This document shows positions 12,850-64,000 of a DNA stretch of 64,000 nt, in pieces (the first letter of the stretch is position 1; every line of letters begins with the position of its first letter). The stretch spans positions 5,518,001 to 5,582,000 of the forward strand of contig OZ218952.1 in assembly GCA_965112735.1 (NCBI GenBank), read 5' to 3'. The position numbers were made by a program, and so were the translations under genes. The notes under the pieces are model-generated. The model was not told where the DNA came from, made no database searches, and saw only the letters and a list, made by a program, of their open reading frames with translations. Source of the stretch: Phaeosaccion multiseriatum (lineage: Eukaryota; Protista; Ochrophyta, other classes).

Positions 12850-12891
<42 letters not shown>

Positions 12892-13520
12892 GACGCATTG
12901 GAACGGAACTGCTTCTGGTCTTACACGAGCATCGAGGGTAGAAGCGCCCTCCTGCAGCTCGCTTACACCAACCCTGCTACCTGGACCAGCCCCTCCGCTT
13001 GGGGCGGGGAGTTGCCGGGGTCCGGTGAGTGGGATGTCGTGCTCATCGGAGGAGAGGAGTCACTCTTCCTCGTTGGCGACGCGCAGAGAAGGACGAGGGA
13101 GGGGAATGGACATGTGCTCACCGTGGAGATCGACAACACCCTCCCGCCTGTCGATGGTGCTGCTGTATCACCAACTGCTGCTGCTGCTGCTATCGCCACT
13201 TGGAGCGCTGCTGCTGCTCCTCTTCGCCGGAGCAGGGCCAGAAGCGCTCCCGATTGGATAAGTGCTCTCGCTGCCAACCGCATGGATCTGGAGACTCCGC
13301 TCATTGAGAAGGACTGGTGCGTGTGTATGTGTGTGTGTGTGTGCGTGTGTGTGTGTAGCTGTGTATTGTGCGTCCGTGTGTGTGTGCGTGCGTGTGCGTG
13401 CTTGTGTGTGTGTGCGTGTGAGTGTGTGTGTGTGGCTGTGTGTGTATGTGCCCGTCATACTTGCTCTCGTGCTTTACTGACCTTCCTTTTGTTTTGCTCC
13501 CTCCCTCTCTCTCCCTCTCC

Positions 13521-13553
<33 letters not shown>

Positions 13554-14612
13554 TTCTTCCTTTGAATCTCCTCCGGGTCTCAATGCCCCCCACCCCTCCC
13601 ATCCGCTCACAGCTACCACTCCTCTCTCAGCGATTCCGGTGCAATGGCACACAGAGTGAGAATTAGGCGCAGCCTCCTTACAGTGGCCATGCCTGCTACT
13701 GCCGATGGCGCTGGTGCTGCCGAGGAGAAGGAGGAGGAGAAGGAGGAAGAGGAAGAGGAGAAGGAGGAGGAGGAGAAGGAGGAGAAGGAGGAGAAGGAGG
13801 AGAAGGAGGAGGAGGAGGAGGAGGAGGAGGAGGAGAAGGAGGAGGAGGAGGAGGAGGTGGTGGAGATGGAGGAGGTGGAGGAGGTACAGGAGGTACAGGA
13901 GGTGCAGGAGGAAACGAAGACCGCCAACAACCAAAGCAGCAGCTGGATGTCGTGGGCCTTCTTCAGCGCACGAGGGAAGAGAGGTAGCCACGCAGATGGG
14001 GCGGAAGAGACCAAGGAGCAGGAGGAGGAGGAGGAGGAGGAGGGGGAGGAGGAAGAAGGGGGGGCTGGCTCCCGGGGGGTCGCAGGGGGCAGCTCACCGC
14101 TACGCACTCGCTTGGCATGCGACCCTCGGCCACACACACTCAGCTCCCTCCTGACGGGGGCCAAGCTCGAGACCGACTACGGCTGCTTCGAGCTTCCCCA
14201 CGGCGCCCGGGGCGAGGATGGAGGCGACTTTGTCGGGGCGAAGATGGATAATGATGATGAGAAGGTGGAGGAGGAGGAGGAGGAGGAGGAGGAGGAGGAG
14301 GAGGAGGAGGAGGAGGAGGAGGAGGAGGAGAAGAGGGGGCGAGGGGGGGGAGGGGGAGGACCCTTGTTGCTGCCCCCTCGGCCCCGCCTTACTCGCACAG
14401 CCGCGGAGGTCTTCATCCATGATGTTCTCGCGCGTGCGCCAATCTGGAGCGACCGTCGCTTCCAGCCAGGACGTGTATCTAGACTTGCATGGAGAGGAGG
14501 ACGAGGAGGAGGAGGAAGAGGACGACGACAAGGCGAACGAGCCCCCCCCACCCCGCCCTCCTCGCGCAGCTCGGGAGATCTGAGCCGCTCAGCATCCGCA
14601 TCGTCTCTTTAG
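10288..14612 (+). CDS. RBR (RING1-IBR-RING2) E3 ubiquitin ligase with a transmembrane segment and long acidic C-terminal extension
   Basis: CGIC...CSHAFCNSC...CPGLYC; IBR CPTPGC...CPECRHSACNACGARAH; RING2 CPRCNFFIEKDGGCRHMSC...FCWTC. Hydrophobic exon at about 11830-11951; later exons are less certain. Confidence 0.8.
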
Positions 14613-14720
14613 AGGAAGTCAGTCCATGTATAGGTGTTGGTCATGTGAAAAGGACTATGGCATCTCTGTTTAGAGGGAGTCAGTCCATGTTTAGGTGTTA
14701 GTCATGTGAAAAGGACTATG
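14608..14720. repeat. Two-copy ~61-bp direct repeat
   Basis: TTTAGAGG(A/G)AGTCAGTCCATGT(A/T)TAGGTGTT(G/A)GTCATGTGAAAAGGACTATG occurs twice. Confidence 0.8.
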
Positions 14721-14982
14721 TATTTATAATTATCACATGAATGAGACAGGTACGGGCCTCCGCAAGCCGTTCCGAACCGCGCTGATCTATCGATCTGCCC
14801 ACCTTCCCCAATGTAGCTACCTCCCACAACAGATAGTCTATTGAGCAGGTACTGAATCATCGATGACAGGGAGAGGCGGCCTGGGGAGATGCCACGTCAG
14901 GCCCTCCCTCCCCCCTCTGGCTGCCCATAGCCCACACCCCTCTCGGTTGTACAGACGCGGCCGGCTTGACAATCAACAGAGC

Positions 14983-15654
14983 CTAGAGACTTTGCCTCAA
15001 CCTTTCCACCGGACCATTGTTTTGGGATACTAGTGATCCCAATAACCACCCAAGGACTGGCACTCGTAGCATCGACGCTACGCTCGCATGCTCGTAGTAT
15101 CCAGCATCCGCCACCATCTCGGCCGTTGTTTCATGCCGACGTTCCTTCTCTGGTGTTTGCACGAAGTACTGCGAAAAGGCATCGCCCACCCCATCCCACT
15201 CGATGGTTCCATCCTTGTGAATCGCATACCCAAGTTTGTTGGATGCTCCCTCAAGCTTTTTCTGAGCGGCCTGGAACAACGCCTTGTCCGTCACGTACGA
15301 GTCCACCCGACACTTGTTGCCATCCACAGTCACTTCTGTAAACGAATGGTGGACGGTCGATGGAAAGCTCCCGCCCATTCCGTCAAAGATGGAGTTAGGA
15401 ATGGGTACGGCGACAACGGTGGCATCGTCAAATCCAGCTTCGCGCAACAGATGAACGAACAAATTCGTCTTGGGCGTGCAATGCCCTCGCTTCTGCTGTA
15501 AAGTGTGCTCCGCCGTGGCCAAATCAAAGCGATTGGTAAATCCGAAGGCTACATCATCTCGCACATAATTGTGCAACGCCACGGCCAGTTCCCGGGGCGA
15601 AGAAGTGGTTGCTTGCAACGACTTGACGATCGAGTGAACAGTGCCACTGCTCAT
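14983..15654 (-). CDS. Transglutaminase-like superfamily protein, apparently intronless
   Basis: ALHNYVRDDV.FGF, RGHCTPKTNLFVHLLREAG (Cys), HHSFTEV (His), RVDSY (Asp) triad spacing. Confidence 0.8.
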   Translation of the reverse strand: MSSGTVHSIVKSLQATTSSPRELAVALHNYVRDDVAFGFTNRFDLATAEHTLQQKRGHCTPKTNLFVHLLREAGFDDATVVAVPIPNSIFDGMGGSFPSTVHHSFTEVTVDGNKCRVDSYVTDKALFQAAQKKLEGASNKLGYAIHKDGTIEWDGVGDAFSQYFVQTPEKERRHETTAEMVADAGYYEHASVASMLRVPVLGWLLGSLVSQNNGPVERLRQSL

Positions 15655-16077
15655 CGTTCTAGGCCACCAGAGAGAGAGCACAGCGAGGTAAGAGGGGAAA
15701 GGATGGCCCCAGAGGGTCACCACAGGGAGAGCACTGCGAAGGGGAGAGGAGGAGAGATGATAAATTGACTCAGCACAATCTCTGTGCTTTAAACTGAAAC
15801 TCTTTTGTTGACCTGCTACGTGCAATTCGGAAGGCTCCCTCGTCATGTCAAGTGCGCTCCGCTTGACAGACTCCACCACACTTGTGTTCGAGTGAAGGAG
15901 ATGCCAAGCTATACTGCTCTCGCCACTCCGTGCACACGGTGGCGGTAAAATATCAAATATCTCTTTCTCGGGCCTCTTTCTCCCCCTTGAGATGTTTGTC
16001 AGCTGTGATTTCGGCAGAGGACCAACTCTCACACAAAGGACACCCCGGCCGGATCGTGGGCGTTCCGTTCGCCGTTC

Positions 16078-19000
16078 ATGGCGCCCTCGTATGCGCTGTG
16101 TGAGGCGCAAGCGGAGTCTTTGGCCAATCTCAACAACTCATTTCTTCTGCTGGCACCCTCCACCACCGAAGGCGTAGGCTGCTTCGCGCTTCAGGACATT
16201 CCTGAGGGTACGCGTCCCTCTCTCTCTATCCCCTTGTCAACAGCGCTTCACACCACCTTGATCCTCTCTGTCCTTTTCTCCCGACAGGAACCTGCGTGCT
16301 AAGATGGGATTGCATGTCGATGCCGCAGGTTGAGATCCCCATGGCGGTGCTTACGGAGCGAGTGCCAGAGCCCGTGCTCCGGCAGCTCATGTGAGTACGT
16401 GAGTACGATATGAAGACTTCGCGCTATACACGCTTTGCACACTCGCACTTAACCCAATCTCATCCTCGTGCTTTGCCACTGTGTCACAGGCGGATCTGGC
16501 CCATTATAAAGAGGGCGCCAGCCCTGCCCTCAGAAGGGTCGGCTCCAATCGCCACCTTCGTCGTGTGTCCCGTCAACTTCTCAGAGAGCCTGAGCTACAT
16601 CAACTTTGTCAATCACAGCCCTTCCAACGCCAACATCCACTTCAACCCTCACACGTACCAGTACTTTGCCACCCGCGACGTGAAGGAGGGGGAAGAGCTC
16701 TTCATTGATTACAGGGATTATGCCCCATACAATATCACCTGGGAAGAGGAGTCTGACGAACAGCGAGGCCTTGTCAATAAGGCAGAAGAAGAAAAGGGTC
16801 AGAATGTATGTAGAGAGATGAAAGAAGCAGAGGAGGAAGGGGGTGAGCATGCAGGTACAGAGACGAAAGGTCAAGGTCAAGCACGTGACGAGGGCGACGG
16901 TGTCAGGGGCGGGGAAGGGGGCACCGCGAGCACAGCGAGGCCTTCACAAGGACAGGAGAAGAACCGGGGCCAGGCTGAGTGCCAGCCAGGGCCGTCCAAG
17001 GGACAGCAGAAGGGCCGGGGTCAGGCCAAGGCCCAGGCTAAGTGCCAGCCAGGGCCATCTCGCGAACAGCAGGGCAAGGGGCGGCCTGGAAAGAAGCGTA
17101 AACGGGTGCTGGAGTTCTACAGCGGCATCGGAGGTTGGAGATACGCTCTACAGCATGCAGTGGGAGTAGCTCAAGAAAGAGGAGGAGGTGGAGGGGGGGG
17201 GCAGGAGGAGGAGGAGGAGGAGGAGGAGGAGGAGGGGAAGGAGGAGGAGGAGGAGGAGGAGGAGGAGGAGGGGGAGGAGGAGGAGGAGGAGGAGGAGGAG
17301 GAGGAGGAGGAGAGGGAGGAGGAGGAGGAGGAGGAGGAGGAGGAGGAGGAGGAGGAGGGGGGAGAGCAGGAGGAGGAGCAGGAGGAAGCGGAGGAGGAGG
17401 GGAGGGAGGAGGAGGTGAAGGTCGTAGTAGTAGCTGTGGCACCACCCCCCAGCCCACGCTGCCACTCCTGGAAGAACTGTTTGAAGTCACAGCCTTCGAC
17501 ATCAACCCCGTTTGTAACGACGTGTACCACCACAACCACCCCGATGAGGACCGCCCCCGCCCGCAGAGTCTGGAGAGAATCTCCGTGGTGAGTGAGGGAC
17601 TGAGCGAGCGAGTGAGTGGATGTTGAGTGATGAGTGAGGGAAAGAGTGGGTGAGTGAGTGAGTGAGTGAGTGAGTGAGTGAGTGAGTGAGTGAGTGAGTG
17701 AGTGAGTGAGTGAGTGAGTGAGTGAGTGAGTGAGTGAGTGGGTGAGTGAGTGGGTGAGTGAGTAAGGGAATGAACATGCGTGCCTCGCTCTCTCACCTGA
17801 GCGACCCACCCTCTTTGCCCCTGGGCCCTACCCGGTTGCTTGTCCCAGGCCGCCTTGGACAGCTTTGCCGCAGACATGTGGCTCATGTCTCCTCCTTGTC
17901 AGCCCTACACACGCAGCAACACCTCAGACACGCGTAGAGACATCACCGACGGCCGCGCGGCTTCCTTCCTGCATCTCAGCCGCGCTCTAACAGATATGAA
18001 GGCGCCCCCCCGATGGCTTGCTCTGGAGAATGTCGTGGGGTTTGAGGCGTCCGCCTCGTGTGCGTTGTGGTTGCAAGCGTTGGCCAAGCGTGGCTATCGG
18101 GTGTGGCAGTTTCACCTCTCTCCAAAGCAATTCGGGGCACCTAACGACCGTCCTCGTTACTTTTGTGTCGCCGAAAGGAGAGGAGAGGGTGGGGGAGGGG
18201 GAGCAGCAGCAGGAGGAGGCGCAGGAGGAGGAGGGGGAGGCGGAGGAGGGACAGCGGGCAACTGTGGCGGCGATGGCGGCGGGGATGGTCAGGTGTTGAC
18301 CTCAATACCGGGCTGTGCCTACCACAGGCTACAAACAGCAGCGATAGACGAATATCTCATGTTGCCATCCGTCCTGCGTGGAGAGATGGGTAGCACAGTA
18401 GGCTCAGCAGCGCCGGCCGAAACGAGCAGTAATCCAGCCAGAGCGAGGTCAGAGCCGCAGCCAGATTCAGAGCAAGAGCCCGAGGAGGAACACCCCCGCG
18501 ATGGAGGGGGGGCATCTTCCAGCGAACAGCCGCATCAGCATCAGCAGAGTGTGGTAGATGTGGATCAGTACCTGGTGTCGGATACCGTGTTGGGCAAGTC
18601 CTCGTCCTGGTGCTTCGATATCGTGTCACGCCGCAGTCGACGCTCTGCGTGCTTCACCAAGGCCTATCATAAATATGTCAAGGGAACGGGGTCTGTACTG
18701 CTCATGGAGGAAGAGGACGAAGATGGGGGAGGAGAAGGAGGAGGAGGGGGAGGGAGAGAGGGAGGGAGAGAGGGAGGGAGAGGGGGAGGAGGAGGAGGAG
18801 GAGGAGGAGGAGGAGGAGGAGGAGGAGGAGAAGAAGAAGGAGGAGGAGGGGTTGGAGAAGGAGAAGGAGCAGGAGGAGGAGAAGGAGGAGGAGGAGGAGA
18901 AGGAGAAGGAGGAGGAGGAGGAGGAGGAGGAGGAGGAGAAGGAGGAGGAGGAGGAGGAGGAGGAGGAGGAGGAGGAGGAGAAGAAGGAGGAGAACCCCCC

Positions 19001-19342
19001 GGGACACCAAGCGTCTCGCTGCGTGCCAACAAGAGCAACAGTGACGAGGACGACGATGGTAATGGAGAGACGCAGGAAGATTGTCGACTCAGAGCGCCTC
19101 AGGACCGTTCCTTTGACGGGAATTTGCTTGAGCGCTACTCGGGGCGGTTACGCTATTTCAGCCCGCTGGAGCTTGCGCGTCTGCACCACTTCCCCCCTGG
19201 GTTTGGTTTCCCGGCCGGCGTGAGCGACAAGAAGAGGTGGGAGCTGTTGGGGAACGGTCTTCACGTGCTCGTGGCGGGGGAGGTGTTAAAGTTTCTCTTG
19301 TCCAGGCAAGAGGAGGAGGAGGAGGAGGAGGAGGAACGATGA
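16078..19342 (+). CDS. DNMT2: SET-domain + DNMT2/TRDMT1-type cytosine-C5 methyltransferase fusion
   Basis: SET: APSTTEGVGCFALQDIPEG, FVNHSPSNAN, TRDVKEGEELFIDY. MTase: VLEFYSGIGG, AFDIN, SPPCQPYTR, ENVVGF, PNDRPRYF, DNMT2-specific CFTKAY..GTGS, LRYFSPLELARL, LLGNGL. There is a frame change (intron or indel) within the GGA repeat at about 17180-17415. Confidence 0.8.
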
Positions 19343-19515
19343 TTAAAGGATGGCTATCTATACTTGCTGCCTTCGGAGCGACAAGATGATTAAAATGCAT
19401 TAAAGTTGGGTGAGACTGGCTGCTTCCCACGAAAGCAGGCTACGGCGCGCACGCACGCACACACGAACGACTCTCGCTCCTCTCTCGCCCGACAGAGGAC
19501 AGAGGACTGGCCGAC

Positions 19516-20809
19516 TCAGGTGCCTGTGCCTTTCTTGCCTGACTTCCTCCCACCGCTCCTTCGCGGCGTCTTCTTGGCTGAGACAGGAGGTGGGGCGGGT
19601 TTCTCTTCCTCTTCCTCTTCTTCCTCCTCCTCCTCCTCCTCCCCCTCCTCCTCCTCCTCATCATCATCATCATCATCATCATCCTCTTTCGCCTCTTTCG
19701 CCTCCTCCTCCTCCTCCTCCTCTTCCTCCTCCTCCTCCTCATCATCATCATCATCGTCTTCCTCCTCCTCCTCCTCGTACACCACTTCGGGCTCGCCACC
19801 CCCCTCCTGCTCGTCTTCCCCTCCACCCCCCCCTGTCCCTGCAGAAGAAGCTCCCATCTGACTCAGCAACAGATTCAGGCGCCCACTCAGCTGCATGAAC
19901 TTCGGAAAAGCCGTCAGCCGTCCGTCGATGATCTGATGCAGCTTGGCGAGCTTCTGATTGAGATCGGGCACACTGACAAGGTAGGACATGTGCTTCCACA
20001 ACACCGCCCTGATCCACAGGGCCAGCGCGGCCCCTCTCTGCGGTCGCTTCTCAAACTTGCCCACTAGCTTGGTTAAGAAAGGCACCACATAGACTGTCGA
20101 AAGCTTCTCCACAGTCGCCTCAATGACCGCAGGGTTTGTCACGCTGATGCAGTGCTCGAGGTGCTGAGCGTCGTCGGATTGCAAGGCTTGCTCAAGCACA
20201 CTGACCAAGCTCTTCGTCTTGGGTACCAACCCCTCTCCTCCCTCCTGCTCCAACTGCCTCCGTCGCTGCTGCTCGAGCAATTTCCTGCCCTTTATGCTCG
20301 CCGAGTCTCTCCTGTCGATCCTCTCCGATAGAGCCTCTAAGCGCTCCGCTATCGTCTTGGCCGCCTCCTCGTCCTCCTCCTCTTCATCCTCCCCCTCCCC
20401 CTCCTCCTCCTCATCCCCACCCCCGGTTTCCGAGTCGACTTTTCGTCGCTTCTTCGCACTGGAGGCATCAACCTGATCCGCTCCCATCATACCCAGATCC
20501 CCCGGCCCTGCGATGTGCTCCCCTCCCTCCACTGCCGCCGCCGCTGCGACAGGCATAGCTTTCCGCACCGAGGCACCAGCAGCTGCTGCCTCTGATTGGG
20601 GTAGTTCTACCTCTACTTGGGTCTTCATGCCTCCAGAGCCTTCTGCGGTGAAGCTGATGAGCTCGAATACAGGCGCGGAAACCGACCCATGCATCACCAT
20701 GACCTCTCTATGTGGCTTGCGCTCTCCGAAGCACGCACACAGCGCCCCCAACTGCTGTCCCTGCCCCTGCGCCTTCACTACGCACGTCACCGCTTTGCTC
20801 TTACTATTG

Positions 20810-20851
<42 letters not shown>

Positions 20852-23021
20852 GCACCCTTCTTGCCCTTCCCCTTGGTGTGACCATTCATGTGGCCGCTCC
20901 GCCCTTCGCTGCCAATTGCCTGCTGTGACCGCGTCACCACAACATCTCCGGAGTCTAGTACAGCAACAATAGTAATCACGTCTGCCGAACCAGTACCAGC
21001 AGCAGTGCCTTCCTCTTCCTCGCCGCTGGCTACGTGCAGCGAGGTTGAGGTGACATTGCCCGGCAGCGTGAATGTGTCAATCGCCTCATTGGTGTCCGCG
21101 CTGTCCATAGAACAGAGAGCAGAACGCGAGAAGAATGGGTCGGGAGGCAAAGAGAGAATAAGAGACACGAGAGAGCACACAGAATGAGAAGGATGGGTGG
21201 GAACAAGAAGAGAGAGAGACAAGGGGGGGAGGACTTGAGTCTTCGAAGCGGGGCGAGCGATTTCGTCTGGCGGCAAGAACGTGAATCATGACAAGGGCCG
21301 TGCACGAGTGGGTGGACTTGGAGAACGAGAGAAAAGAGAATACGCAGAGGATGGCAGTGGAAGGGCAACGAAGAGACAGCACAGTAACGTGAGCGCTGAG
21401 TACAGCTGTGAAAGCACTACTCCTTCGTACCTTTGACAGTAGAAGAGGTTGACGAATCGACTGTCTGGTGAGGAGGAGATGAGGAACCGCCCGTCTCTGG
21501 AGAAGCTCATACATGATATTGACGTTGAGTGTCCCCCCTGGAACTTGCGCATCTGCTCAACCAAAACCAACGACATAGACGGAGTAAGAGGGAGAAACAG
21601 ATGCGGTGAGCCACAGAGCGAAGAGCCGAAACAGGGGAGGGCAAGAAGAGCGGTAGACAGGGCGGGACACCACACACAAGGCTGCTGTCTCACGCGACAA
21701 AAAGATAAATAAGCCTTCCCCCCTGCTGAGTCAACATCAAGACACCCACTCTTCACCCAACAAGGACAGGTGGAGGTCTATGGGTCAGATCTTGCCAGCA
21801 TGAAGGGCGCGGCGTGGGTCTCCAATTGTGTGCATGTGTGTGTGTGTGTGTGTGTGTGTGCGTGCGTGGCCCTCAATCCTTCTCATGCCGTATGCTTCAT
21901 CCCGTCACCCACCTTCTTCCCTGAGCCGAGATCAATAATCTTGATGCTGGAGCTGGCCACCGCCACGGATTGTCCGCTTGGATGCACACACAGGCTCGTG
22001 GCGCCATGCTTGACACCGCGTATCCGCCTCTCCGCCTTATCGTCCCCTATGTGCCACTCAGTCACCACCTTGTCACTAGAGGCGCTCAGCACCCGGTTCC
22101 CATCTATCGAAAAAGATACTGCTGTGACGGCGGGATGTCCCCCCCCCTCCCCCAGCCGCTTCACTATCACGCCCCGCTGAAGGTTCCACACCGACACCGA
22201 GCCGGACTCTGTCCCAAGAGCGATCAAGCCCAGGGCCTTGGACGAAGGCTTGTTGCTCCCGCTGCTCCCACGCTTCCTCGTCTGCTTTCCGCCAGACAGT
22301 AAGAGGGCACCAGTTAGGGGGGGGGGGATAGAGACACCTTCCAGAGTACTTGTAGATCCGCCTCGCCCCTCTCTTGGGTGAAGGTATCAAGCAAAGGCAA
22401 AAGAAACGATACAAGGGATACACAAAGACGTAGTACTTTGGAGCGCTGAATGAGGCACTGTTACTCACCGCTGCAGGCCGATACCAGTCTATGCAGGAGT
22501 AGCGCAGCCCCAGGTGCTTGGGGTCCACGTACTGCTGCCTCAGCTCGCCCGTCGACTGCCGAGGAGAGGGAGCAAGTGGGGGAGGAGAGAGGGGTGCCAA
22601 CGGAGAGGAGACGCCAGTCAGATGTGCTCAAGGTCTCTCGCGGTGCAGAGAAGCCAATCTCTAGCAAGGAGCGGCCCAGCTACTCTCTCGCCCATGTCCG
22701 TGGACGCACACACCCCACGCCAAACCACGCAGCTCTTCTCATCCTTCACAGAGGAGGCGTCGCTGCTCGCCGATTTGCACCCCAGACCACGAGAGCTATA
22801 GTGCCTGAGAAATAGCACTTCTATCCAGCGCGACCGTCCGAAGCGAGCCCTAGCAATGCCTTCCTCTCCTCTCCAGCCCACCCACCCAAAGCAAAGGGTG
22901 TGCGAAATGGACTCACCACGTCGAAGAGGCGCAACCGACGGTCACTCGACACCGTTGCCAGTAGCGTGCCTGTGGCATCGAAGCAGCACAGACCTGTGGA
23001 TCCGGCAGCTGCAGACGCCAT
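19516..23021 (-). CDS. WDR43: WD40 + Utp12/Dip2-domain SSU processome protein (WDR43/UTP5-like)
   Basis: WD repeats (LATVSSDRRLRLFD, ALGTESGSVSVWNL, GHSTSISCMSFSRDG), then LEQALQSDD...LWIRAVLWKH...QLSGRLNLLLSQ and an acidic tail. Confidence 0.85.
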
Positions 23022-36660: not shown

Positions 36661-38379
36661 ATGAGCAATGTGCTGGTGGTGGGAGAAGGAGACCAAAAAG
36701 CTGATGCACACATCCAGCAAGCCGCTGCTGTGAATACGCCTCTGCACCTCAAGGGCACGGGCGTGCTGGGGCTGATCACCAGACGGCCGGAGGCATGGGC
36801 TAGTGCCCGTTGCGTCCAACAGCAGTTCCGGACCCTGGGGCTCGCGGACACAAATGTAGATGTGGCCTGCTCGAGACGTGGGCATGCCTTCTTCGGGGAC
36901 AGCGACAGACGAGCAGTGACAGAGCTCACCCTCGGCCACTTCCTCGAGGAGGTGTGTGGCTCTTCATCCGCCGCTTCCCAGAGGGGGCTGGACGGGGGAG
37001 CGGCGTCAACGGAGGCTCCCAACCATCCGAAGTACCCTCCAAGGCCTCCCTCCGCCCGTCCTTCTTCTGCTGGCAATGATGATGGCGTGCAGCTTTACCT
37101 CTGCCAGTGCCCCGTCATCTCAGGAGAGGCTGGAGGAGAGGCTGAATCGCCGTCGCCCGATCTCGGCTGTCTTGTTACGGAGAACCTTCTGCACATGTAA
37201 GGCTAAGTAGGAAGAAGTCGAGGAAAGGCGGGGAGCGGACGCTCGTACCCAGCCTCACTGTCAATACCCATACATATTGCTCTTCTTTTCCTCACACGTC
37301 CAGACACTCCGCCCTTCCCATACCCCCCCCGGCCCTCCGTCATTGCTATGACTAGTCCGGCCTTCGTGGGAGACAAGGCGGACTTCAAGGCCTTGAACCT
37401 GTGGATCGGCGCCGCTCCCACGTCCACCAACCTCCACTTCGATCAGAGCCACAACGTGCTCTTTGTGCTCTCGGGCTGCAAGAAAGTGCGTCTCCTGCCC
37501 CCCTCCGCCACGTCGAAGGTGGCCGCTCTGCCCGCCAGTGGAATGAATGCCAACCACAGCAACCTGGACGAGGAGGCCGTCCTTGCACTCTTGAGGAGCA
37601 GCAGTGGCGATCGGACCGGTCTTGGTGCCGATGATGCAGCAGATGCAGCAGCAGAGGGTGAGGCAGCCGCAGAGGCCAGGCAGCCCTCATCTGTCCCCTG
37701 CGAAGTGTACGTCCGGGCTGGGGAGGCGGTGTTCATCCCTGAGGGGTGGTGGCATCAGGTGAGCTCGGAAGCGCAGACGATTGCGGCGAATGTGTGGTTT
37801 CGGGGCGTCGCCGATCGGTTTCTGTGCCCAAGCGAGTCTCCTCCACCTCAGCCTCAGGACGGCCCCCCGATTCCCACCGCATCGGCCAACAGCCACATGC
37901 GCGAGTACTACCTCCGCTCGCTCGTGAGCTCCCTCTTGCGGGATGAAAAGGCCGCGAGAACGAGGAGAGCGAGACACATGTGCCCCTCTCTGAACGCAGC
38001 TGCTGCGCTGCCCGTCTTGCTGCGGGGGAGTGCAGAGGAGCGGCGCCAGTGCCTCCGAGGGATGGACATGGGCGTCATGCTGGCGACGCTCCCGGATGTC
38101 AAGATGCATCACCCGCAGCAGTGGAGAGAGCTGTGTCGCAGCCTCGACCCTTTGACCTGTGAGTGCATCACCTCGGTGTGGGAGGGGCAGGACATGTCGT
38201 CGGAGATGGCCTCCTTTTATGGTTGTATACTCGGGCAGGAGGAGGAGGAGGAAGAGGAGGAGAAGGGCAGTGGCAGCAGTGGCGCCCCATCCAGTGCCAT
38301 CCGCGACGTGCTCATGCGGGGCAAAGAGGCCTTCGCCGCAGAGGCGTGCGCTGACATGCTGCAGAGGCTGCTGGGCTGA
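36661..38379 (+). CDS. JmjC / cupin-8 2-oxoglutarate-Fe(II) oxygenase
   Basis: LYLCQ; NLWIG..TSTNLHFDQSHNVLFVLSGCKKVRLLPP; GEAVFIPEGWWHQV (HxD...H). Confidence 0.85.
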
Positions 38380-46400: not shown

Positions 46401-47737
46401 ACATTGGGCCCAACAAACGGCTTCCATCGTTCCTTGCTCTTCACGAGGAGGAGAGCAATTTCCTGACCAAAGCAACGACTTCTTCCGAGTACATCTATTG
46501 CCTGTGGCAGCTCTGGGTGTCCGTGGGACACGAAGTCGGTGCTGCGTCCTGCGAAGAAGGTGAGCCAGTGAAGAAGGCGTTTCGGCGGCTCGAAGAGGAC
46601 ACGGAGTTCTTCAAAGGCATGCTTAAGACACTGGCTCAGTACGGTGTGATCCTGCCCGTGACCGGACTCCAAGACGAGGAGGGCCGTAAGGACGTGTACG
46701 TGGCCCCAACGAGGCTCCGATTAGGCGGGGATGGCAATGCTGAGGTGCGGGAGGTCTTAACGGCTTTCCTCAAGGCGGGGGCGGAGGAGTGTACTCGAGG
46801 CCATTTCAAGGCGTGCAATGCTCTTTTTCCGTCTGGGACGCTACCCTTTTTGCTTGCCTGCTTTCTGGGAAAGCGAAACAAGGAGGTGGTCGTCCAGATC
46901 TACGGGTGCGCCAAGTATGCCGCTGCGCTTCGGGTGAACCACGTGGACGTTCTCGTCTACGTAGAAGGGAGCGATCTTCTGCTGTACGTGAAGAGCAATA
47001 CCCAGCGTAGCTGTCGGCACGTTGGGGGGATGGTTCACAATTGGATCGGAGATATGCTGGACGAGAGGTTCAAGGGCTTAGCCTTCATTTCCCCTGAAGC
47101 ACCCATGGAGTCGATTGCAGGCAGACGTCACCCCCTGGCGGGCGAGCTGGGCCTGCTCGACGACGAGTATGCCAAGGACGACGCGGCGCAGTTCGATGTC
47201 TTTTTGAGCCACGCCGGGCCCGACAAGTGGGGGCTTGTCTACAACCTGTGGGTGGCGCTGTGGGACGACGGCATAACGGCCTTTCTGGATAGGGAGGATC
47301 TTCAATTGGGTCGTCAAGCTCCCGGCTACGTCGTCAATGCGGCGAAGAAGGCCAAGATCGGATTGGTGGTGCTCAGCCCAGCGTTCCTCTGCCGCGAGTG
47401 GTGCCTCAAGGAGACAGAGATTTTCATGGAGAGGCTTGAGAAAAGGAGAATGGGCGTCGAGGAGGAGAAGGACTTCCTGGTGGTGCCCCTCTTCCACAAA
47501 CTCACACCGCACGACTGCTACAACGGAACGTATCAGCTGCTCGAGGCTCATCCCGAGATAGCCAAACAGTGGGAGGAGTGGGAACAGAATGATGGACCGG
47601 AGAAATACTGGCCGAAGCTGTGGCAGTCTCTTTTGCTTGTCCTTGCGGGGCAGACCGGCCTGGAGTATCAGGAAGAGCAGTATGAGGCCGATTACGTTGA
47701 GAAAGTAAGGGCGCGCATTAAGACTACACTAAGATGA
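43472..47737 (+). CDS. LRR-ROC-COR-TIR protein A (intact, 11 exons)
   Basis: N-cap exon 43472-43652. LRR exons 43784-43855, 43934-44005, 44079-44150, 44243-44386, 44462-44533, 44610-44684, 44762-44833, 44930-45001, 45078-45149. Terminal exon 45282-47737 with P-loop VGRHKAGKTT, STVGIE, WDFAGQ, GSHRD, COR-like VHVNPLWL and TIR FDVFLSHAG...EWCLKE. All junctions were checked and are in frame. Confidence 0.92.
43784..45180 (+). repeat. LRR exon/intron cassette array A (~150-bp units)
   Basis: Intron consensus GTRAGTGGTACGCGAACCCGTTCGCGTCCCTTT...TGACCAAAGAACTYTCCTCCCATCCGCAG alternates with 72-nt-type exons. Confidence 0.92.
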
Positions 47738-54300: not shown

Positions 54301-57300
54301 CAATCAGGGCCTTGAAGGTAGGTGGTACGCGTACCCGTTCGCGCCCCCTTGACACGTTTGTTTATAACCTACTTCTAACATCTTCCCTCTGATACATAGG
54401 TCGTATCCCCCCCCCCCTCATCGGGCGATTGGGAATCCACATCAAAATATTCGCATTCGGTGGCAACTCTCTCAGACTCCCCAAGGACATTCACAACCAG
54501 TCACACCTGACTAAGCTCGAATTGGCCGATCAAGGCCTTGAGGGTGAGTGGTACACGCACCCCAGTTCGCGTCCACTTGATATTCGAGCCGATGTAACTC
54601 TCCTCTGCTCGGCAGGCAAGATTCCAAAGGAGCTGGGCGAACTTAGGAGCTTGACCGTCCTGGACCTCTCCGACAACAAGCTCAGAGGTAAGCCTACTCG
54701 TTATCTCCAACCGCCCGTGCCGCTACCGTAGTGTTTGACGTAAGACGTCCCTTCCCCTCCACAGGCGCTATTCCAGCGGCCCTCATCGGGCGATTGGGAG
54801 TCCAGATCACAAGCTACAAATTCAAGGGCAAGAACAACTCTCTCCGTCTCCCCAAGGGCATTGGCACCCAGTCACACCTCACTGAGCTCGACATGTCCGA
54901 CCAGGGCCTTGAAGGTGAGTGGCCTCCGTTGTCAAATTCACTTGGTACTTGAATTGATTGACAAACTCCTCCACGCCACAGGGAGCATACCATCGGGTCT
55001 TAAAGACCTACAGAACCTGAAGATACTCAATCTCAACATGAACAGGCTCAAAGGTATGTGGTACGCGAACCCGTTGTCCACCTCACTTGATCTTTCTATG
55101 ACCAAACAATGCTCCTCCCGTCTGCAGGCGAGATTCCGAAGCTGGACGGTCTGACGAACCTGACCACCCTTCACCTCGCAGCGAACAACCTCAGCGGTAA
55201 GTGCTACGCGAACGCTTGTCCACTTCACTTGATACTAGTGTGACCAAAGACTTTTGTTCCACTCCACAGGGAGCATTCCAGCCTGGAATTTCGGGCCTGG
55301 AGGTCTCCACGGGCTGACCACGCTGTCACTCTCTAGTAACGAGCTCACCGGTAAGTGGTACACTCGTACCTTCTGACGCCCCCTCATATTGGTAGGATTT
55401 GGTTCCTTTAGTGCAGGTCTTACTTCCCTCGTTATTTATGTTCCTGGTGGCCTTTCCTGTTGGCCTTTGCTTCCCCCCCCCCGCTTGCCTCGTTGCCCAG
55501 AGCTCGATCTTGAGACCGCTCAGAGCTTACTCGAGCATACCCCCGCTGCACTCATATCTGGGAATGCGTTTGCCAACATTCCTAACGGCGTCTGCCGAAA
55601 TGGGCTGGCATCTGTCGTTCGATTTCTGGAAGATTTGGCACAGAGAGCCGTGGCTTGCTGGGATCTGAAGGTCGTATTGCTAGGGTCAGAGGGTGCTGGA
55701 AAAACGAGTCTTGTTCGCTCCATCGTGGAGCGTGGTGCTGCCCAGACGGAGGGCGCATCGCCATCCACCGTGCTGGTGGATACTCACGTTTGGCAACCAA
55801 GATGGGATGACAAGACCCTGAATGTGCACTTCTGGGACATCGGCGGTCAGCACTGCTCCTCGGCGATTCTCCCGCTTTTTCTGACCGAAGGGGCGCTGTA
55901 TGTTTTGGCGGTTGATCTCCACCGCTACGCTACCACTCCGTCTTCAGCGAGGTGTGATGTGACGCACTGGCTTGAGGTGGTTCAGGAACACTGCCCAGGG
56001 AGTGTGTTGGTTGTGGTGGGCACCCACACCGATGAGTTTCGAACACGTCAAGGGATTGATGAAGCTCTAGCACGTCTGAATCGTGAGGTGCTGGACCACA
56101 GAGAGAGTATGAGTATCGGGGCACAATCATCTTCAAAGATTGAGGTGAAAGAGGTCTTTGCTCTCGGGGTCGACTCACCTAAAAGTGTGCAGGCTGTGAT
56201 GGATCACATTCAAAGCCTTGCGCTGGGTCAGGGTCAGGGTCAGGATCAGGGGCAAGGTCAGGGTGACGCGCAGCAGGCGCAGCAGGGGCAGCAGGGGCAG
56301 CAGGGGCAAGGTCTTGGCGTATCGCCAGCGTGTAAGCCCTTCCCGGACATAGGTAAGCAAATCCCAAAATCGTGGAGGGATGTGTACAATGCGCTCGATA
56401 ACCTGAGGAAGAAGGGGCGCGTATTTGCTTCGTTTTCTGATGTGGTGGAGGAAGTAGGGAGGGGTGGAGAGAGCACCACACGTGAGGCCTTGCGCCTTCA
56501 CCAGAATGCAGGCTTTGTGCTTTGGGGAGGCCATGCTGACGATGTGATTTATCTTGATCCGGCGTGGTTGATGGCGTTGCTAAGGCCGTTGGCTGACCAC
56601 AAGCTGAGCGAGCGTCGAGAGAACAGCACCTGGGAAAAGGGTGAAGATCAACTCTTTGCGCAGGGGGAGAGTCATGCACATCTCGTGGGAGGGCAAGTCG
56701 TGTACCGTGATCTGCGTGTGGAGGGGGACACCTTTTGCCACACCGGTCATCTAAATCGCGCCTACCTAAGCCTTCTGTGGAAGCTTTGGCACCAGTGCCC
56801 GCTGGAAGGTGAAGTGATTCAAGGATGCAGTGATGCGAGGCGACTCGCTCCGTCCAGAGTCCTGGAAGACGCACCATTGTTCAAGACCACGCTGAACACT
56901 TTGGTGCGGAAGGGTATTCTCATTCCTGTGAAAGAGGGTGCGGAGACTAGTAAATACGTCGTTCCTGCACGCCTGGCGAGTATGAGTGAGCGGGGTCCTC
57001 TGCGTGCATTCAGACGATGGGGCACAGGGGGCAGGGTGTGGGAAAAGAGAGTCACGGCCGCACGCGGAATGCCCTTTCCAATGAGCACCCTGGCGCTCTT
57101 TCTGGCTTCGGTCGGCAGTGCTCGTCAAGTGGATATAAAGGCATGTTCGAGCAGGAGCGCGTGTATTTTGATCAAGGGTGTTGCCACTTTCGTAGCGGTC
57201 AGAGACTTTGATTGTTCCGTGTACGTTTGTGGCGATGGCGTCTCTGCACAAGCAGCTCTGAACACGTGCCACAGCTGGCTCTGGTCGACGTTAGACAACG

Positions 57301-58044
57301 AAAACAACAAGTTGTCGGGGCTGGGGTGTAGGAACGTCACGGACCCCCCCCCCAACTCATACCGTTTTTTCAAGCCTCAAGTGGAAAGGGGCGGTGCCTG
57401 ATGCTGGCAAGTACGACGTGTTTCTGAGCCACTCTGGGGAGGAGAAGCGGGGCATTGGACTTACGCTGCACACGATCTTGGAGCTGAGAGGAATTCCGAC
57501 TTTCTTGGACGAGCCAAGCTTGCACGGAGGCGATCGCGCGGAGGACAAGATGCTCAAGGTGGCCCGCACCGCCCCGATTGGCGTGATCGTGCTGAGTCCG
57601 TCTTTTGTGTGCCGAGAGTGGCCTCTTCAGGAGATGCAAATCTTCATGGAGAGGGCGGAGAAGGCGAAGAGGGGTGAAGAAAAGTTCAAGTTGGTACCGC
57701 TATTCTTCGGGCTGACGGCTGAAGAATGCGGTGAAATGGAGCTACTACAAGGAAACCATCCTAGCGTGAAGGATACGTGGGACGAATGGAAAGGATTGAA
57801 ATGGGGTTGGCAGAAGGAGACGGAGAATAGAGCGAGTGACCTTGCTAAAAGGCTGCTGACGAGTGTGGGTGCACACACGGGTGTCCGCAATGACCAGCGA
57901 GAAGGTCTACTTGCTTTGGCCGAGCGAGTGGCCAACGTGGTGGAGAAGAACGTGACGGAGTTCGAGCATGAGAAGAGAGCTGCACCTAACACGAGCGGAA
58001 GGGATAAGGAGGTTGTTGAACCTACGTCAAGCAGTGCGAATTGA
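51373..58044 (+). CDS. LRR-ROC-COR-TIR protein B (24 exons); the TIR is out of frame, best explained by a C10 run at 57344-57353
   Basis: N-cap exon 51373-51514, 22 LRR cassette exons between 51831 and 55350, terminal exon from 55501 with LGSEGAGKTS, WDIGGQ, GTHTD and IYLDPAWL. TIR YDVFLSHSG...EWPLQEM lies in the +1 frame; removing one C fuses them. Confidence 0.85.
51755..55370 (+). repeat. LRR exon/intron cassette array B (22 cassettes)
   Basis: Same intron consensus as array A; exon sizes 18, 69, 72, 81, 144 and 150 nt; all introns phase 1. Confidence 0.92.
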
Positions 58045-58527
58045 AGGCCGCCAGCATATGACGGATAATACAAAGAGTGAAGAGAGAGGCAACCACACAC
58101 GTCTCTCAATTACTTTTGCTTATTTGCTCGCCTCCTGATAAGTGTGGCTGGGCGACGTCGAGGTTGCTTCTAGTATTCCTTCCTGGATCGCTCGCTCCCA
58201 GTGTCGATATCGCTGCTGCTGTCTCCTTTCCTCCTTTCCTGTGAGTACGATCACTGCCGACTCGCCCTCTTCGACGGACACGTTCAAGCACTGCGAGGAG
58301 GGATGAGGACAAGGACGGACAGACGGAGCGGACATGAAGTAGACACGAGCAGGGCCAACGCGACGAGTTAGTTTGTATTCGTAGCTCAGTCCTCCTCCAA
58401 AAGAAGGCAAAGCGCTCACCCTGACTACGCCCATCTCGTCGCTCTCGGTGGATGAGCAGCTGCGCTGCCGGCCAAGCTCAGAGGCTCACCCCGCTGGTAT
58501 ACCGTCCATATCCCCCTTCGGTGCTGC

Positions 58528-60385
58528 TGGCACAGCGGGGGAGGTGAGGCCATCGATCCACAAAGAGGTTGAGTCACGATTAGCGTGTGCATACGGAAGA
58601 GCGCGCACAGTCAGGAGGAGAGCGAGCCCTTGCTCTCCACAGTCAGTAGCTCCTGCAACAAAAGAAGCTGTAAGGTCTCTGTGATACTACTCGTACTTCA
58701 CTCTGTTCTACTGCGAAGTATCTACTTGCGAGCTGACCTTGTCGTGTGTCCGCGGCCCAGTGAAGAGCGCCGCCTCGAGCCTCGAAGGCATGAGGCCTTG
58801 CTGAGGCCTTGCTTCTGGACGAAGCTGGGCAGACAGAGAGAGCGCGCGCCAACACACACACAGAGAGAGAGAGAAAAGAGGGCAGAGAAGTGCCAAGGGA
58901 AAGCATCAGAAGGGGGGGGAGGGAGACTTGAGAAGGACATTTTTCGATAGAGGGAGAGAGACACACAGATTAGAGAGGTAGAGTAGGGCAGAGTGCAGAG
59001 AGGGAGGGACAAGAGGCACACGCGGGCACAGGAGAGGAGTTGATCGGAAGAGGGCGGGGGTAACAAGACGCAGGACGAGGGGGGAGGCGGAGAGGGAGAG
59101 GGAAAGAGTGAGACAGAGTCAGAGAGAGGGGAAGAAAGAGAGATTGGAGAGAGATAAATACAAACACACGCAGAGAGAGATTCCAGAGAGATTGATGGAG
59201 ACACCAGAGCAGGAATGATACATGGAGAGAAGAGACACAGAGAGAGAGCAGCCCTCACTCACCGCGGTGACGTGTCTCCAGAACCACGACTAGAGCATGT
59301 AGCCCAGAACCACGACTAGAGCATGTAGCCCAGAAGCAACAGTAGTAGCAGCAGCGGCAGCAGTAGCAGCAGCAGCAGCAGCAGCAGCAGCAGGGCCCCG
59401 AGCCTGGGGAGCAGAACTTGTCTGTGGACAGAGGGGCCGTACGCAAAGTACATGTGGATTCCTCATGTGCGTCAGCGTTTGGGCCAGGAAAGGAGTGTGA
59501 GTGCGTGCGTGTGCGTGCGTGCGTGCCGTGTGTGCCGTGACGTTGCGTTTGTGACTGACCTGGGTAGTCCTCCTCAGAAGTCTTCGATATCTGTTTGTTG
59601 CACAACACCAACACACACGCACCTCTCTGCAGCAGCAAGTAGGGTATGAGACATAGCAGCCCCAATACAACGACAGCACGTTTGGCACGTGTGACGGAAC
59701 ATGGACGTCTCCACCCAAGGAGAAGATGGTGAAGAAGGCGATGGCAGCAAATGGCAGGAGCACGGGGATGCCCGGGCTGTACATGAGGCACACCGTGACG
59801 ACCATGCCGATGTGGGTGCAGCGAGCCTGCCAGTGGGTTGGTGGGGGTGGGTCGTGTCAGGACGGGGAGGTGGCAGTGGTGGTGGGTGGTGTCAGTTACA
59901 GTGGGGTAGTTAGTACGGTAGGGTTTTCGGCATTCATGACCTTAATCAGACCCCCTCGTACCCTTCTGCCCGCCACCGATGTTGGACACAACACAAGGTC
60001 CGACAGGGGGGGGGGGCGAGGCAGGTACAAATGGAGAGCATATCGTCGCATTGTCTCGGGGTCAAGAGGTTGGGACTGAATGGCACGGACAAGAGGGAAG
60101 GGTTCTGGCCTCTGTTGATTGGCCCTTCGGTGTTGTATGAATGCTTCGCCTGCCTTGCAGTTTGGCTTCCTCACTCATTCACTCCCTCTTTCATTCGCTC
60201 CCACCTACTCACTCACTCACTCACTCACACACTCACTTAAGTGCTCTCTCACCCCCTCCCTCCCCTGCTTACCACGCCGTCTTTGGCGAGGTTGACTCCG
60301 AAGATGGCGAAAATGATGGTGCTGTAGGCGATGGTGCTCACGGCTATGTTGATAAGCTTCAGCACCAAAGAGCGCTTGCTTTTCT
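58528..60385 (-). pseudogene. TMC/OSCA-like membrane channel gene remnant, copy 2
   Basis: SLVLKLINIAVSTIAYSTIIFAIFGVNL and VVTVCLMYSPGIPVLLPFAAIAFFTIF; collinear nucleotide similarity with 48187-50400. Confidence 0.5.
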
Positions 60386-61557
60386 GGGGGTGGGGGGTTA
60401 GGGGAGGAAGGGAGGGAGGGAGGGAGGCAAGGATTGAGTGATTGAGTGAGTGAGGGAGGGCATCAGACAAAGAGACCGCTCCTTGAAGTCACGAACAGGT
60501 TGCTACATGGAGCCAAAAAGGGAACAGCGAGAGGAAAGGAGGAAGGAAGGACGAAGCAAGGGAATGCACATGAAGGAGTGAGAGGGAGTATGCTGCTCAC
60601 AGACAGGGGAGTGCGCTTCTGATTGATGGAAGAGTGGAGGGCGAGCTGCTGACAAAGGGGGGGTCTCGTGTGCGGAAGATACGACGGGGGGGGGGGGGGG
60701 AGGAAGCGTTGCGAGGCGTGAGGGTCGGAGGAGAACAAGGCTCAAGGATTCTGTACTGTACGAGAGAGAGCGAGAGGGAGAGGAGTTAAATGCCTACCTG
60801 CACCAAGCTCGATCACAAGAGTGTGGTGTTGTGGAAGATAAGCCGCAACCGCGAACAAGTCGCTCGTGTCCTGGAGAGAGGGAGGGTAGGGTGACAACAG
60901 GGTAGAAGAGGGTAGGGAAAACATCAGCTCCAAGGGGTTTTGGGCTTTGGCGTGCTCTTCTCACACAAAAGCCTGCACACCCAAAAAGTGACCTACGATC
61001 AGGTAGACCGACACCCCTCTCTCTCTCTACCTCCTTCGCTTTCTCCCTGATGTTTCCAAGCATCAGGACCATCCATGCCCACACACCTGTCGCTGGCTGT
61101 GCCCCCCCCCTCTCCGTCTCCATCAATAACTTAGTGCTACTCCACTGCCACACCGCCCCTCACTGGACTGGGAAGAGCAGACACGAATACATCTCCCTGG
61201 GCCAGACGTCTGCGAAGCTGCACACGTTCTCGTCGTTTGGGTCCTCGAACAGGATCCAGCTCTCTCGCGGGAAAAAACACGCCATTGTCCCAGCCAAATG
61301 ATGATGACTGACATCCCAGTGGCATCACGTGTTGGTGATCCAAATCTTCACAGGAAGGCGACCTATTATCCACATAGCTGGGGCCCTGCTGCTGAAGAGG
61401 GAGGTACAGTGTGGTACAGTCCACCCTGTGAGAAGACTTGTCACGCCTTTGGAAGTAGTGGCGGCTAGGGGACTTCCTCTGAATGGAGGCAGCACAGGCG
61501 GGACGGGAGAAAACCTAAACTCCTTTAAAGTGCAGTGTTTCGCATAATGGAGCGGCA

Positions 61558-62045
61558 CTTGGGGCCTTCTTCTTGGCCACAACCGGAGCGAGATGGAGGG
61601 AAATGGATGGAGCAACGACAAAAAACCCCTTTGAAGAATTTGCGTGGAGGGAGACGAGGATGGATACGTGGTGGGTTTTGAGCTGCCCCACAATGGGACC
61701 CAAGGTAAGAAGGTCGTGGAGGTTGTGGGGCTGGGGTCAGGGTTGGTATCCCCCTTGCGCGTGTTCATCTCTACATGCGGCTGGGGAAGATAGCGCTCTT
61801 GCTGAAGAAAGGAATGTCTTCGGGGTGGTTGCCAGTGACTGCCTACAACTCCCCCTTAAAAGGTTTGGGACTCAGCTTTGAGTGTAGGTGGGAAAAGGGA
61901 CTTGGCGTTTATAATGAGCAAGAGCATTCCCCATCTCGCATTTCACTAACGGAGCATTCCGTCGGAGCTATGTTAGATAGACCAGCTCTCCGATTTCCTG
62001 GGGCTGCGAGCCTGTCCGACAAGTACCTCACAGGTAAGTGGTACG
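61558..62045 (+). pseudogene. Decayed third LRR(-ROCO) locus: frameshifted N-cap exon plus one degenerate LRR exon
   Basis: LGAFFLATTGARW / GWSND / GYVVGFELPHNGTQG|GTAAG parallels AIFYATSGPAW..GWNTE..GYVVKLDLKSNGLRG. 61951-62033 reads SIPSEL...SLSDKYLT and is followed by GTAAGTGGTACG. Confidence 0.7.
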
Positions 62046-63349
62046 ATAGCAGTGGTTTGCGCCGAAGCTAGACAAGGACGGGCTCAAGCTGGACGCAGAC
62101 AAGCTTCGCACTGACAAAGTCCTCACTGAGGTCTTTGCCAGGGCTGTTTAGAATGCTGTCCTGGACAAGAACAGGGAGAGTGAGCAGGAGGAGAGCGGGC
62201 GGTCTTTCAACAAGGACCTGGGGTGTAGCTCTGCTGGAAAAGCTCGTGGACTTGGGTGTCGTCTTCGAGAAGGCGGATCCTGGTGATGACGCCATTCGTG
62301 CCGAAGTCTCCCCGCGCATGCCAGATCCGATGGTTGACAAGCAGGGGCAGAAACTATGAGATGCGGCACAGTCGGTCAGCGATTCTTTGAACGACAAGGA
62401 GGTTAATTTTAAAGCAGCTGTGCCTCACGCTGGAGCGCCCCCCTTCGCTAGGCACGATTGCGAAACTGGCGGCGACTCTCTGTGGTGGTGGGCTGGAGGC
62501 AAGGGGCGTGGTTTGCTGCTACCGAGGAGGCTACATGGCCTGTCGCAGCTGCGTGACCAGCGAGAAGATGTGTTTGCTTTTGCCATAAGAGTGGCCGGCA
62601 CAGTGAAAGATACGTTGATTTGTCACCATCCCGATACATGCAGATACGCAAGCATTCAAGTAAAGTTCAATCGTCACCCCAAGTTGGCGTACAGAAAAAG
62701 TCGATTGTCGTATCCATTACTCAACCTTTAGGAGGGAAGAGATTCGTGTGGAACTCCCCCCCTTCCCCCTTGTTGATGTGTCAATCATCGACACGGGATG
62801 GATCTAGATACAGATAGAAGGGTGTCGCAGAACCCACAGTCCAGCCTACGACGACAATTGTCAATTAGACTACTACTAGACAAGTGGAGCGACTGGTACG
62901 TGTATTAATACAGCTTAACCCGAGAGCAAGCCTGCTGGCTGCCCTGTCCTTACACAACCAGGCTCTGAGAGAGGAACCCAGGCTCCTGAGCGACGTGCGT
63001 CAGTACTTCGCATATCACAAATGGCATCGACCTACAAACATCCCCAATGCCTAACCCCAGCTTCTTGCTCCCCCCTCATTAGCACTATATACTACTGTAA
63101 CCCCCATACTGCCACACTAACTAACACTACTGCAACTGCATACTACCCCGCTAACTAATACTTAAACTACAAGGCCTAGAAGCCAAAATGCGAGGGATAA
63201 TACTGCAGCTCCAGGAAAGAGGGCAGCCCAGCACCACTCCCAATCGGCCTCCTCCTCTTTCTCCTTCTTATCTTATCACACATTTCAAGCACACCCTTTC
63301 ACTTCCCCCCCCCACCCTCCTGTTTGCTTTCCCTCTGTCTCTTGCTTTT

Positions 63350-64000
63350 CTACATATCCGCCAATCGCCGCTGGGCTTCCAAGCAAACTTGTTCGACCTC
63401 ACGCAGTTGTGTTTTCAGCATTCCCTCGTCTTCTGGGTGGATCTGTATCCATCGGCGCTCAAAGTCCGCGTATCGAAAAGGTCGATTGTCGTTCTCAACG
63501 TACGCGGTTCCATTCTCCATAAAGCTGTAGCGCTTCTTGTCTGGAAACCCCCCATCATCTCCCTTGTTGTAGTTGAGTCGATGATAGTTGGCGCAATCCA
63601 AGGGCTCAACAAGAGTGCGGTAGTTGTTGGCCCTAGTCAACCATGTGATGTGAGGTGCGTCTGTCCAGGGAAATCGAATGCTTGCATTCCACCACCTCTC
63701 TTCGTCCAAAGGCGGGTTTCCCTTGAGAGCCCCGTCCCAAAATGCAGCCAATTCTCGGCGTGCCTCCTCAGCCTCGGTCTTCCTCTGGTCATTTTCCCCG
63801 AGGCGATACACATGAACGTGCCACGGCACCTCCGAGCCCTCTTCTGTCAAGGCGGACGCCTCCAAGGACTCCTTAATGGACCCTAGTCTGGCCAAATTTC
63901 TTGTCATCCTTTCCTCCTCCTTATTGCGCTTGTTCTTGTCGATGGTGCCCATGATGTACTCCAAGGTAAAAAAAGCAACCAACCATCTCCCACCTCCTCT
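63350..64000 (-). CDS. EDS1/PAD4/SAG101-like EP-domain protein (3' part; frame open at the window edge)
   Basis: Three ordered motifs RRELAAFWDGAL, WLTRANNYRTLVEPLDCANYHRL and YVENDNRPFRY match recalled EP-domain motifs (R.ELA.FWD; W....YRRLVEPLDIANYHR; Y....RP.RY). Confidence 0.8.
   Translation of the reverse strand, partial: RGGGRWLVAFFTLEYIMGTIDKNKRNKEEERMTRNLARLGSIKESLEASALTEEGSEVPWHVHVYRLGENDQRKTEAEEARRELAAFWDGALKGNPPLDEERWWNASIRFPWTDAPHITWLTRANNYRTLVEPLDCANYHRLNYNKGDDGGFPDKKRYSFMENGTAYVENDNRPFRYADFERRWIQIHPEDEGMLKTQLREVEQVCLEAQRRLADM

Follow-up and report, generated by a model that had tools for sequence, protein, structure and literature searches.

The minus-strand open reading frame (ORF) at the end of the window, the whole 64,000-nucleotide stretch of DNA analyzed, was confirmed to be a genuine EP homolog, though a shortened one, that is native to an alga and not to a plant. 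Sequence comparison shows homology to the N-terminal two-thirds of the EP domain in plant EDS1, PAD4, and SAG101, and the ORF belongs to an algal family of short EP sequences and not to the EDS1, PAD4, or SAG101 clades. The linkage of such genes to TIR genes, a trebouxiophyte layout of lipase plus EP, and a possible TIR-EP fusion are the new parts. We assign a probability of roughly 60% to the reading that the ORF is a native ochrophyte short EP-type gene, or the last exon of one, whose product works with the neighboring Roc-TIRs as a sensor or adaptor of TIR output.

Sequence and fold of the EP-like ORF

The coordinates of the features in the window and at the compared loci are given in Table 1. 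The EP-like ORF was read on the minus strand over 216 codons in the window with no break through base 64000. The motifs RRELAAFWDGAL, WLTRANNYRTLVEPLDCANYHRL, and NRPFRY follow each other along it in the order given by the preliminary description, which had also noted correctly that the frame stays open to the window edge. Upstream of the in-frame ATG there are 40 T-rich bases ending in AG at 63960-63959, in phase 0. Given the ATG and this preceding tract, translation may start at the ATG (200 aa) or the ORF may be a last exon with more exons beyond the window.

Table 1. Positions of features in the window and at the algal EP loci used for comparison
Sequence	Feature	Positions	Strand	Remarks
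Window	Third TIR-domain ORF, window start	2-724	plus	Pfam TIR 59.5 bits
Window	RBR-type IBR/RING E3 ligase ORF	10225-11598
Window	Transglutaminase-like ORF	14983-16110	minus
Window	SET-domain ORF	16410-17591
Window	C-5 cytosine DNA methylase fragment	17840-19342
Window	Utp12-domain ORF	19516-21276	minus
Window	Cupin/JmjC ORF	37348-38379
Window	Roc-(COR)-TIR ORF, 786 aa	45377-47737	plus	TIR at 47147-47734; Roc 65 bits, TIR 44.2 bits
Window	Roc ORF, then TIR ORF	55389-58044	plus	Roc ORF 55389-57401, 62.9 bits; TIR ORF 57394-58044, 46.9 bits
Window	Spliced gene between the nearest TIR gene and the EP-like ORF	57700-62936 (left end approximate)	minus	7 GT..AG introns, from joints in run X5
Window	Very high-copy repeat just downstream of the ORF stop	62800-63200		Word depth 920-6460 vs ~137-550 in the flanks, all DNA runs
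Window	EP-like ORF	63350-64000	minus	Stop codon 63350-63352; in-frame ATG 63950-63952; open to window edge
Window	NRPFRY	63470-63487	minus	Codon 63473-63475 equivalent to AtEDS1 R493 / PAD4 R420
Window	Stretch matched by Pfam EDS1_EP	63551-63793	minus	ORF residues 70-150 = profile positions 25-91 of 211
Window	VEPLDCANYHR, most conserved EP core motif	63578-63610	minus	Equivalent to AtEDS1 V465-R475
L003, metagenome (JGI 3300081568)	TIR exons, then EP exons	848-2592	plus	Same strand, within 1.7 kb
L054, Trebouxia	TIR exon			Pfam score over cutoff; EP gene 1.7 kb away
L055, Coccomyxa	TIR-like exon in head-to-head neighbor gene			Running into a 745-aa TPR protein
L056-L058, variants of one trebouxiophyte locus (ENA metagenome)	TIR_2 / STAND / TPR gene			Divergent from a Lipase_3+EP gene
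L059, same sample as L056-L058	TIR gene			Another paralog; 1.1 kb from EP gene

The Pfam model EDS1_EP (PF18117) matched the ORF with 34.2 bits (E value, 2.6e-8), above its gathering score of 23.1 bits, the match being partial and covering profile positions 25-91 of 211. In a phmmer search against all PDB sequences, EDS1, PAD4, and SAG101 chains were retrieved exclusively, and the profile of the ORF with its 13 algal relatives matched rice PAD4 (E value, 1.8e-15), rice EDS1 (2.3e-14), Arabidopsis EDS1 (1.7e-11), SAG101 (4.6e-7), and no other family. Full-length plant EDS1-family proteins from metatranscriptomes matched the window at 63365-63820 only. Chance similarity was rejected on the EDS1_EP score and on the PDB matches being restricted to EDS1, PAD4, and SAG101. 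An Atlas feature search with the ORF gave only low-score, unrelated clusters. A word-indexed protein search with the single ORF sequence found no match among products of 119-378 aa, and with a profile, no product of the window turned up among proteins of 80-255 aa.

AlphaFold2 gave an all-helical model (pLDDT 74.6, pTM 0.72) for the 200 aa that begin at the ATG, and its two low-confidence stretches coincided exactly with the two insertions of the ORF. In Foldseek, the best 13 PDB matches of the model were all EDS1, PAD4, or SAG101, and the top-ranking AlphaFold DB clusters were plant EP proteins. VIA-align gave Z scores of 10.6 to 14.8 for twelve EDS1-family entries compared to 6.0 for the next fold, syntaxin; in the best alignment (Z 14.8) the model was aligned to residues 398-562 of OsEDS1 only. 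Plant EP rows were part of the alignment behind the model, and when only algal rows were used the model was unusable, with a pLDDT of 47; therefore, the fold evidence repeats the sequence homology and is not independent of it. The divergent EP homolog with insertions that the preliminary description proposed was borne out by Pfam, phmmer, the algal profile, Foldseek, and VIA-align, that is, also by the EDS1_EP search and the superposition on EDS1/PAD4 which it had named as checks.

The homology to the plant EP domain (PF18117; PDB 7XEY, 8ZF0, and 4NFU) extends over ~120-160 residues and comprises the helices from the EP start up to and including the V-E-P-L-D-I-A-N-Y and R-P-x-R-Y motifs. Only 43 residues follow NRPFRY in the ORF, whereas plant EP domains run ~100 residues beyond that point. 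The helical bundle that is complete in AtEDS1 (residues 385-623) is thus without its C-terminal half in the ORF, as in every algal member. In plants, the ligand pockets require two EP domains, joined via lipase-like domains; unlike in the plant EDS1 family, no lipase-like domain was found within the window, and if the gene has one, it would have to be encoded past base 64000.

The equivalents of AtEDS1 R425, R490, and R493 are kept in the ORF as in the plant EP domains, and F419, H476, and K478 are changed to T, L, and Y, respectively. K440/441 falls inside an insertion where no alignment is possible. The conserved EP cavity set (F419, K440/441, H476, K478, and R493) is therefore incomplete in the ORF, with R493 kept. 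The roles of the cavity residues, including R493, have been described (PMC6377607, 10.1101/2022.05.02.490369). Among algal members, just two retain the R493 equivalent, namely, the window ORF and P0001 (the L003 gene); it is gone from the remaining green-algal sequences, which read NRPSQY, NRPAVY, and similar. The Arabidopsis EDS1 strings given in the preliminary description (KRAELAGVFD, WIKLATRYRRLVEPLDIANYHRHL, and GRPTRY) agreed with the AtEDS1 sequence, the numbering of R493 was right, as is that of H476 and K478, and alignment upheld the retention of the last Arg of RPxRY.

Algal relatives, host, and phylogenetic placement

An exhaustive search of 1.84 billion representatives with the single ORF as the query yielded only three weak relatives, and a profile search found 13. 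The named relatives come from trebouxiophyte green algae, namely, Elliptochloris bilobata (WJX81_006897), Coccomyxa elongata (g11270), and Trebouxia sp. C0006 (WJX82_003281), and have the same core and the same early C terminus as the ORF. The family core, shared by PF18117-positive proteins from Trebouxiophyceae and from metagenomes, reads W-L-x-R-x-x-x-Y-R-x-x-V-E-P-x-D-x-A-x-Y-x-R ... Y-x-E-x-x-N-R-P, with the C terminus ~40 residues further on. The window ORF shares 11 invariant columns with the 13 members and stops at the family-typical position; unlike the trebouxiophyte forms, it has two extra insertions, a very long branch, and a host in another supergroup. The EP core was absent from the 185,579 prokaryotic species genomes and from the IMG/VR viral contigs searched, so a bacterial origin and a giant-virus vector are both without support.

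A maximum-likelihood tree was built from 49 EP cores, comprising the window, 13 algal, and 35 plant-labelled rows. The window sequence and the 13 algal rows, the trebouxiophyte forms among them, were placed on one side of a branch with 100/99 support, and 34 of the 35 plant-labelled rows formed one clade at 100/99, the exception being L016. The phylogeny with plant EDS1, PAD4, and SAG101 that the preliminary description had called for thus put the ORF outside the single seed-plant clade, and the window row fell inside none of the three family clades. The branch of the window row is very long (2.26), and its exact sister group is accordingly uncertain. A recent origin by transfer from a seed plant is effectively excluded. 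The metagenome loci L005-L053, mostly ordinary plant EDS1-family genes, were used for comparison and control only.

The host is an ochrophyte stramenopile, in agreement with the non-plant lineage suspected earlier. Chrysoparadoxa australica supplied the best relative of the neighboring 786-aa Roc-TIR ORF (Roc+TIR layout shared, 36% identity); LRR-Roc proteins from two brown algae, Hapterophycus and Ectocarpus, ranked next. The GC3 of the EP-like ORF (0.635) is host-like, the neighboring ORFs ranging from 0.58 to 0.69, and three DNA runs from the source sample contained the ORF at a depth no lower than single-copy.

In the plant-immunity literature through 2026, EP proteins are stated to exist only in seed plants (PMC10834447, PMC9806590), and the preliminary description, which called the domain seed-plant-specific, reproduced this view of the field correctly. 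The restriction itself needs qualifying, as EP sequences of brown and green algae have been published. InterPro EP-domain 'EDS1' genes were reported in 2025 for Sargassum (13-19), Saccharina (3), and Undaria (1), with none in Ectocarpales, and were interpreted as salicylate-pathway genes (PMC12089773); green algae have been acknowledged to contain short EP-like sequences (10.64898/2026.05.20.726525). With brown- and green-algal EP hits already in print, the novelty of algal EP homologs is reduced. The brown-algal genes (IPR044214/IPR041266) are the nearest published precedent, compared here by description. Like the window ORF, they are EP-domain matches in stramenopile algae, multi-copy and often associated with transposable elements (TEs); unlike the present analysis, that work did not study the EP domain, its truncation, or TIR linkage (PMC12089773). 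No paper linking algal EP-like genes to TIR genes was found, a provisional result given the many subscription papers outside the search.

TIR genes and the proposed role of the EP-like protein

In all three TIR ORFs of the window, the catalytic Glu of the W-x-x-x-E motif aligned to the 'YEL' glutamate of AbTIR, and the best PDB matches were AbTIR, At1g72930, RUN1, and Roq1 (Pfam TIR, 44-60 bits). The closest of the TIR receptor genes, with its TIR ORF at 57394-58044, converges on the EP-like ORF at a distance of 5.3 kb. The interval from the TIR end at 58044 to the EP stop at 63350 contains one spliced gene, so the two are near each other and not adjacent. Taken by itself, the proximity in the window is weak evidence of a partnership. 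The TIR ORF at the window start is 60% identical to the one at 57394-58044 and probably represents the end of a further Roc-TIR receptor gene, the rest of which would lie upstream of the window.

Across loci, a TIR gene was found within ~5 kb of the EP gene or collinear with it at six of eight independent algal EP loci, the window included, compared to none of 28 plant loci; the control, 28 plant genomic EP loci totaling 396 kb and searched with the same TIR queries, gave no TIR match. No TIR pairing was seen at the EP loci of L004 (Elliptochloris) and L060/61, and the Roc-TIR locus of Chrysoparadoxa had no EP-like neighbor. At L003, TIR and EP would be connected in frame by a phase-0 GT..AG junction joining 1518 to 1948, and the family motif is recovered with a second intron; the predicted product of this gene is possibly a natural TIR-EP fusion protein. 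At L056-L058, the Lipase_3 and EP pieces are collinear and both are matched by plant EDS1-family proteins.

The ORF is proposed to be native to a brown-alga-related ochrophyte, either as a complete gene or as the final exon of a longer one, and would encode a short EP-type helical domain. The neighboring Roc-TIR receptors retain the catalytic Glu and for this reason probably make NAD-derived nucleotides, and the EP-like protein may act together with them as a sensor or adaptor of TIR output, as plant EP domains do. We infer such a receiver of TIR products from the gene neighborhood and from homology to the plant system; ligand binding, TIR partnership, and expression of the protein are likewise what we infer. 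The resemblance to the plant EDS1 system includes putatively catalytic TIR domains in the region of the ORF, and the all-helical fold; the ochrophyte differs in that its TIRs are joined to Roc GTPase receptors and not to NB-ARC-LRR. In Thoeris-type prokaryotic pairs, a TIR enzyme is coupled to an effector that senses its nucleotide product. The likeness to Thoeris concerns the way of working only, with a TIR gene beside the gene of a presumed signal receiver, and there is no sequence relation to EP.

Run X5 is labelled 'DNA?' yet carries seven minus-strand GT..AG joints and so behaves as RNA. Its depth was 20-28 on the neighboring minus-strand gene and 0 on 63401-64000, and the expression that the preliminary description had wished to see confirmed by RNA reads was not found in this one RNA-like run from one condition. 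Because X5 had no reads on the ORF, its function is to be taken as putative. In the DNA runs, the ORF was found at ~1.3-2 times the flanking depth, in broken contigs of 199-293 bases, and it may be a recently duplicated, repeat-flanked or TE-associated copy. These data, together with the high-copy repeat next to the ORF, the gene intervening between it and the TIR gene, and the report that Sargassum EP-domain genes mostly overlap TEs (PMC12089773), suit a real EP homolog that is an inert, recently duplicated, transposon-associated, and unexpressed copy, lying near TIR genes incidentally. We consider such a copy unlikely, since the frame is intact over at least 216 codons with all family-invariant residues and the family-typical stop, GC3 is like that of the neighboring ORFs, and the TIR linkage is repeated at independent green-algal loci; moreover, a single RNA run from a single condition cannot prove a lack of expression.

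A functional EP-like protein could also have a role unrelated to TIR products, either linked to stress or salicylate or as a generic helical interaction domain, which would agree with several plant cavity residues being changed, with the absent C-terminal half of EP, and with the desiccation response and endomembrane localization of the Sargassum proteins (PMC12089773). Such a role appears quite improbable given the contrast in TIR linkage between algal (6/8) and plant (0/28) loci and the locus permitting an in-frame TIR-EP fusion; the Sargassum function was, besides, assigned by transfer of Arabidopsis names with no test of the EP domain. Next to no weight is given to contamination with plant DNA or to a chimeric assembly of a plant EDS1-family fragment with algal sequence: identity to plant EPs is about 30%, or 23-27% in the alignment, the ORF groups outside the seed-plant clade (100/99), its early stop is of the algal type, its GC3 is host-like, and three DNA runs of the source sample cover it at or above single-copy depth. 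In favor of a chimera, no short contig covers the whole 6-kb stretch, so it is the assembly itself that places the ORF contiguous with the TIR cluster.

Beyond the reading of the ORF as a native partner of the Roc-TIRs, the TIR link across algal EP loci suggests a TIR-to-EDS1 partnership older or wider than seed plants. That a short EP module works with TIRs in chlorophytes and in an ochrophyte, being ancient or having moved between algal lineages, with the window ORF as the receiver of Roc-TIR nucleotides, is put forward tentatively and at less than even odds. With EP and EDS1 seen as an invention of seed plants, the signaling of the older TIR enzymes in algae, bryophytes, and ferns has been left unexplained, and the TIR-linked short EP module is a testable candidate for the missing receiver of the TIR signal. 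The module may also serve as a simpler system for defining the minimal ligand-sensing unit of EP. For the LRR-Roc-TIR candidate receptors of brown-alga-type genomes, which presently have no downstream component, the EP-like ORF is a possible one.

Other features of the window and of the compared loci

The product of the spliced gene between the nearest TIR gene and the EP-like ORF looks membrane-like. The gene seems to run, with its 3' part, into the end of the TIR ORF on the plus strand; its translation gave no clean long ORF and no identity. Joints and loose ends were seen in several runs at 62841, 62915-62956, and 63204, around the high-copy repeat. Between the TIR genes, several ORFs related to chromatin and RNA follow each other from 10225 to 21276.

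In the tree, the EP core of L016 (Ga0207433_10314464, 1053 bases) fell among the short algal forms. The contig owed its plant label to a GC of 0.43, and L016 may be another algal or non-seed-plant EP member. In L057 (5994-10234) and L058 (6070-10234), a plus-strand gene with class-3 lipase-like and EP-like parts has apparently the layout of the EDS1 family, and plant EDS1-family proteins match the lipase and EP pieces in order. The host is a trebouxiophyte-like metagenome alga (ENA ERZ26858887), and a TIR_2 / STAND NTPase / TPR gene is located head-to-head with the lipase-like+EP gene on the minus strand (~1356-5674). L046 (540-4389) is a transcript-like metagenome contig of 4.8 kb with two long tandem ORFs, the first of 642 aa with no Pfam match and the second, of 628 aa, encoding a full Lipase_3+EDS1_EP protein.
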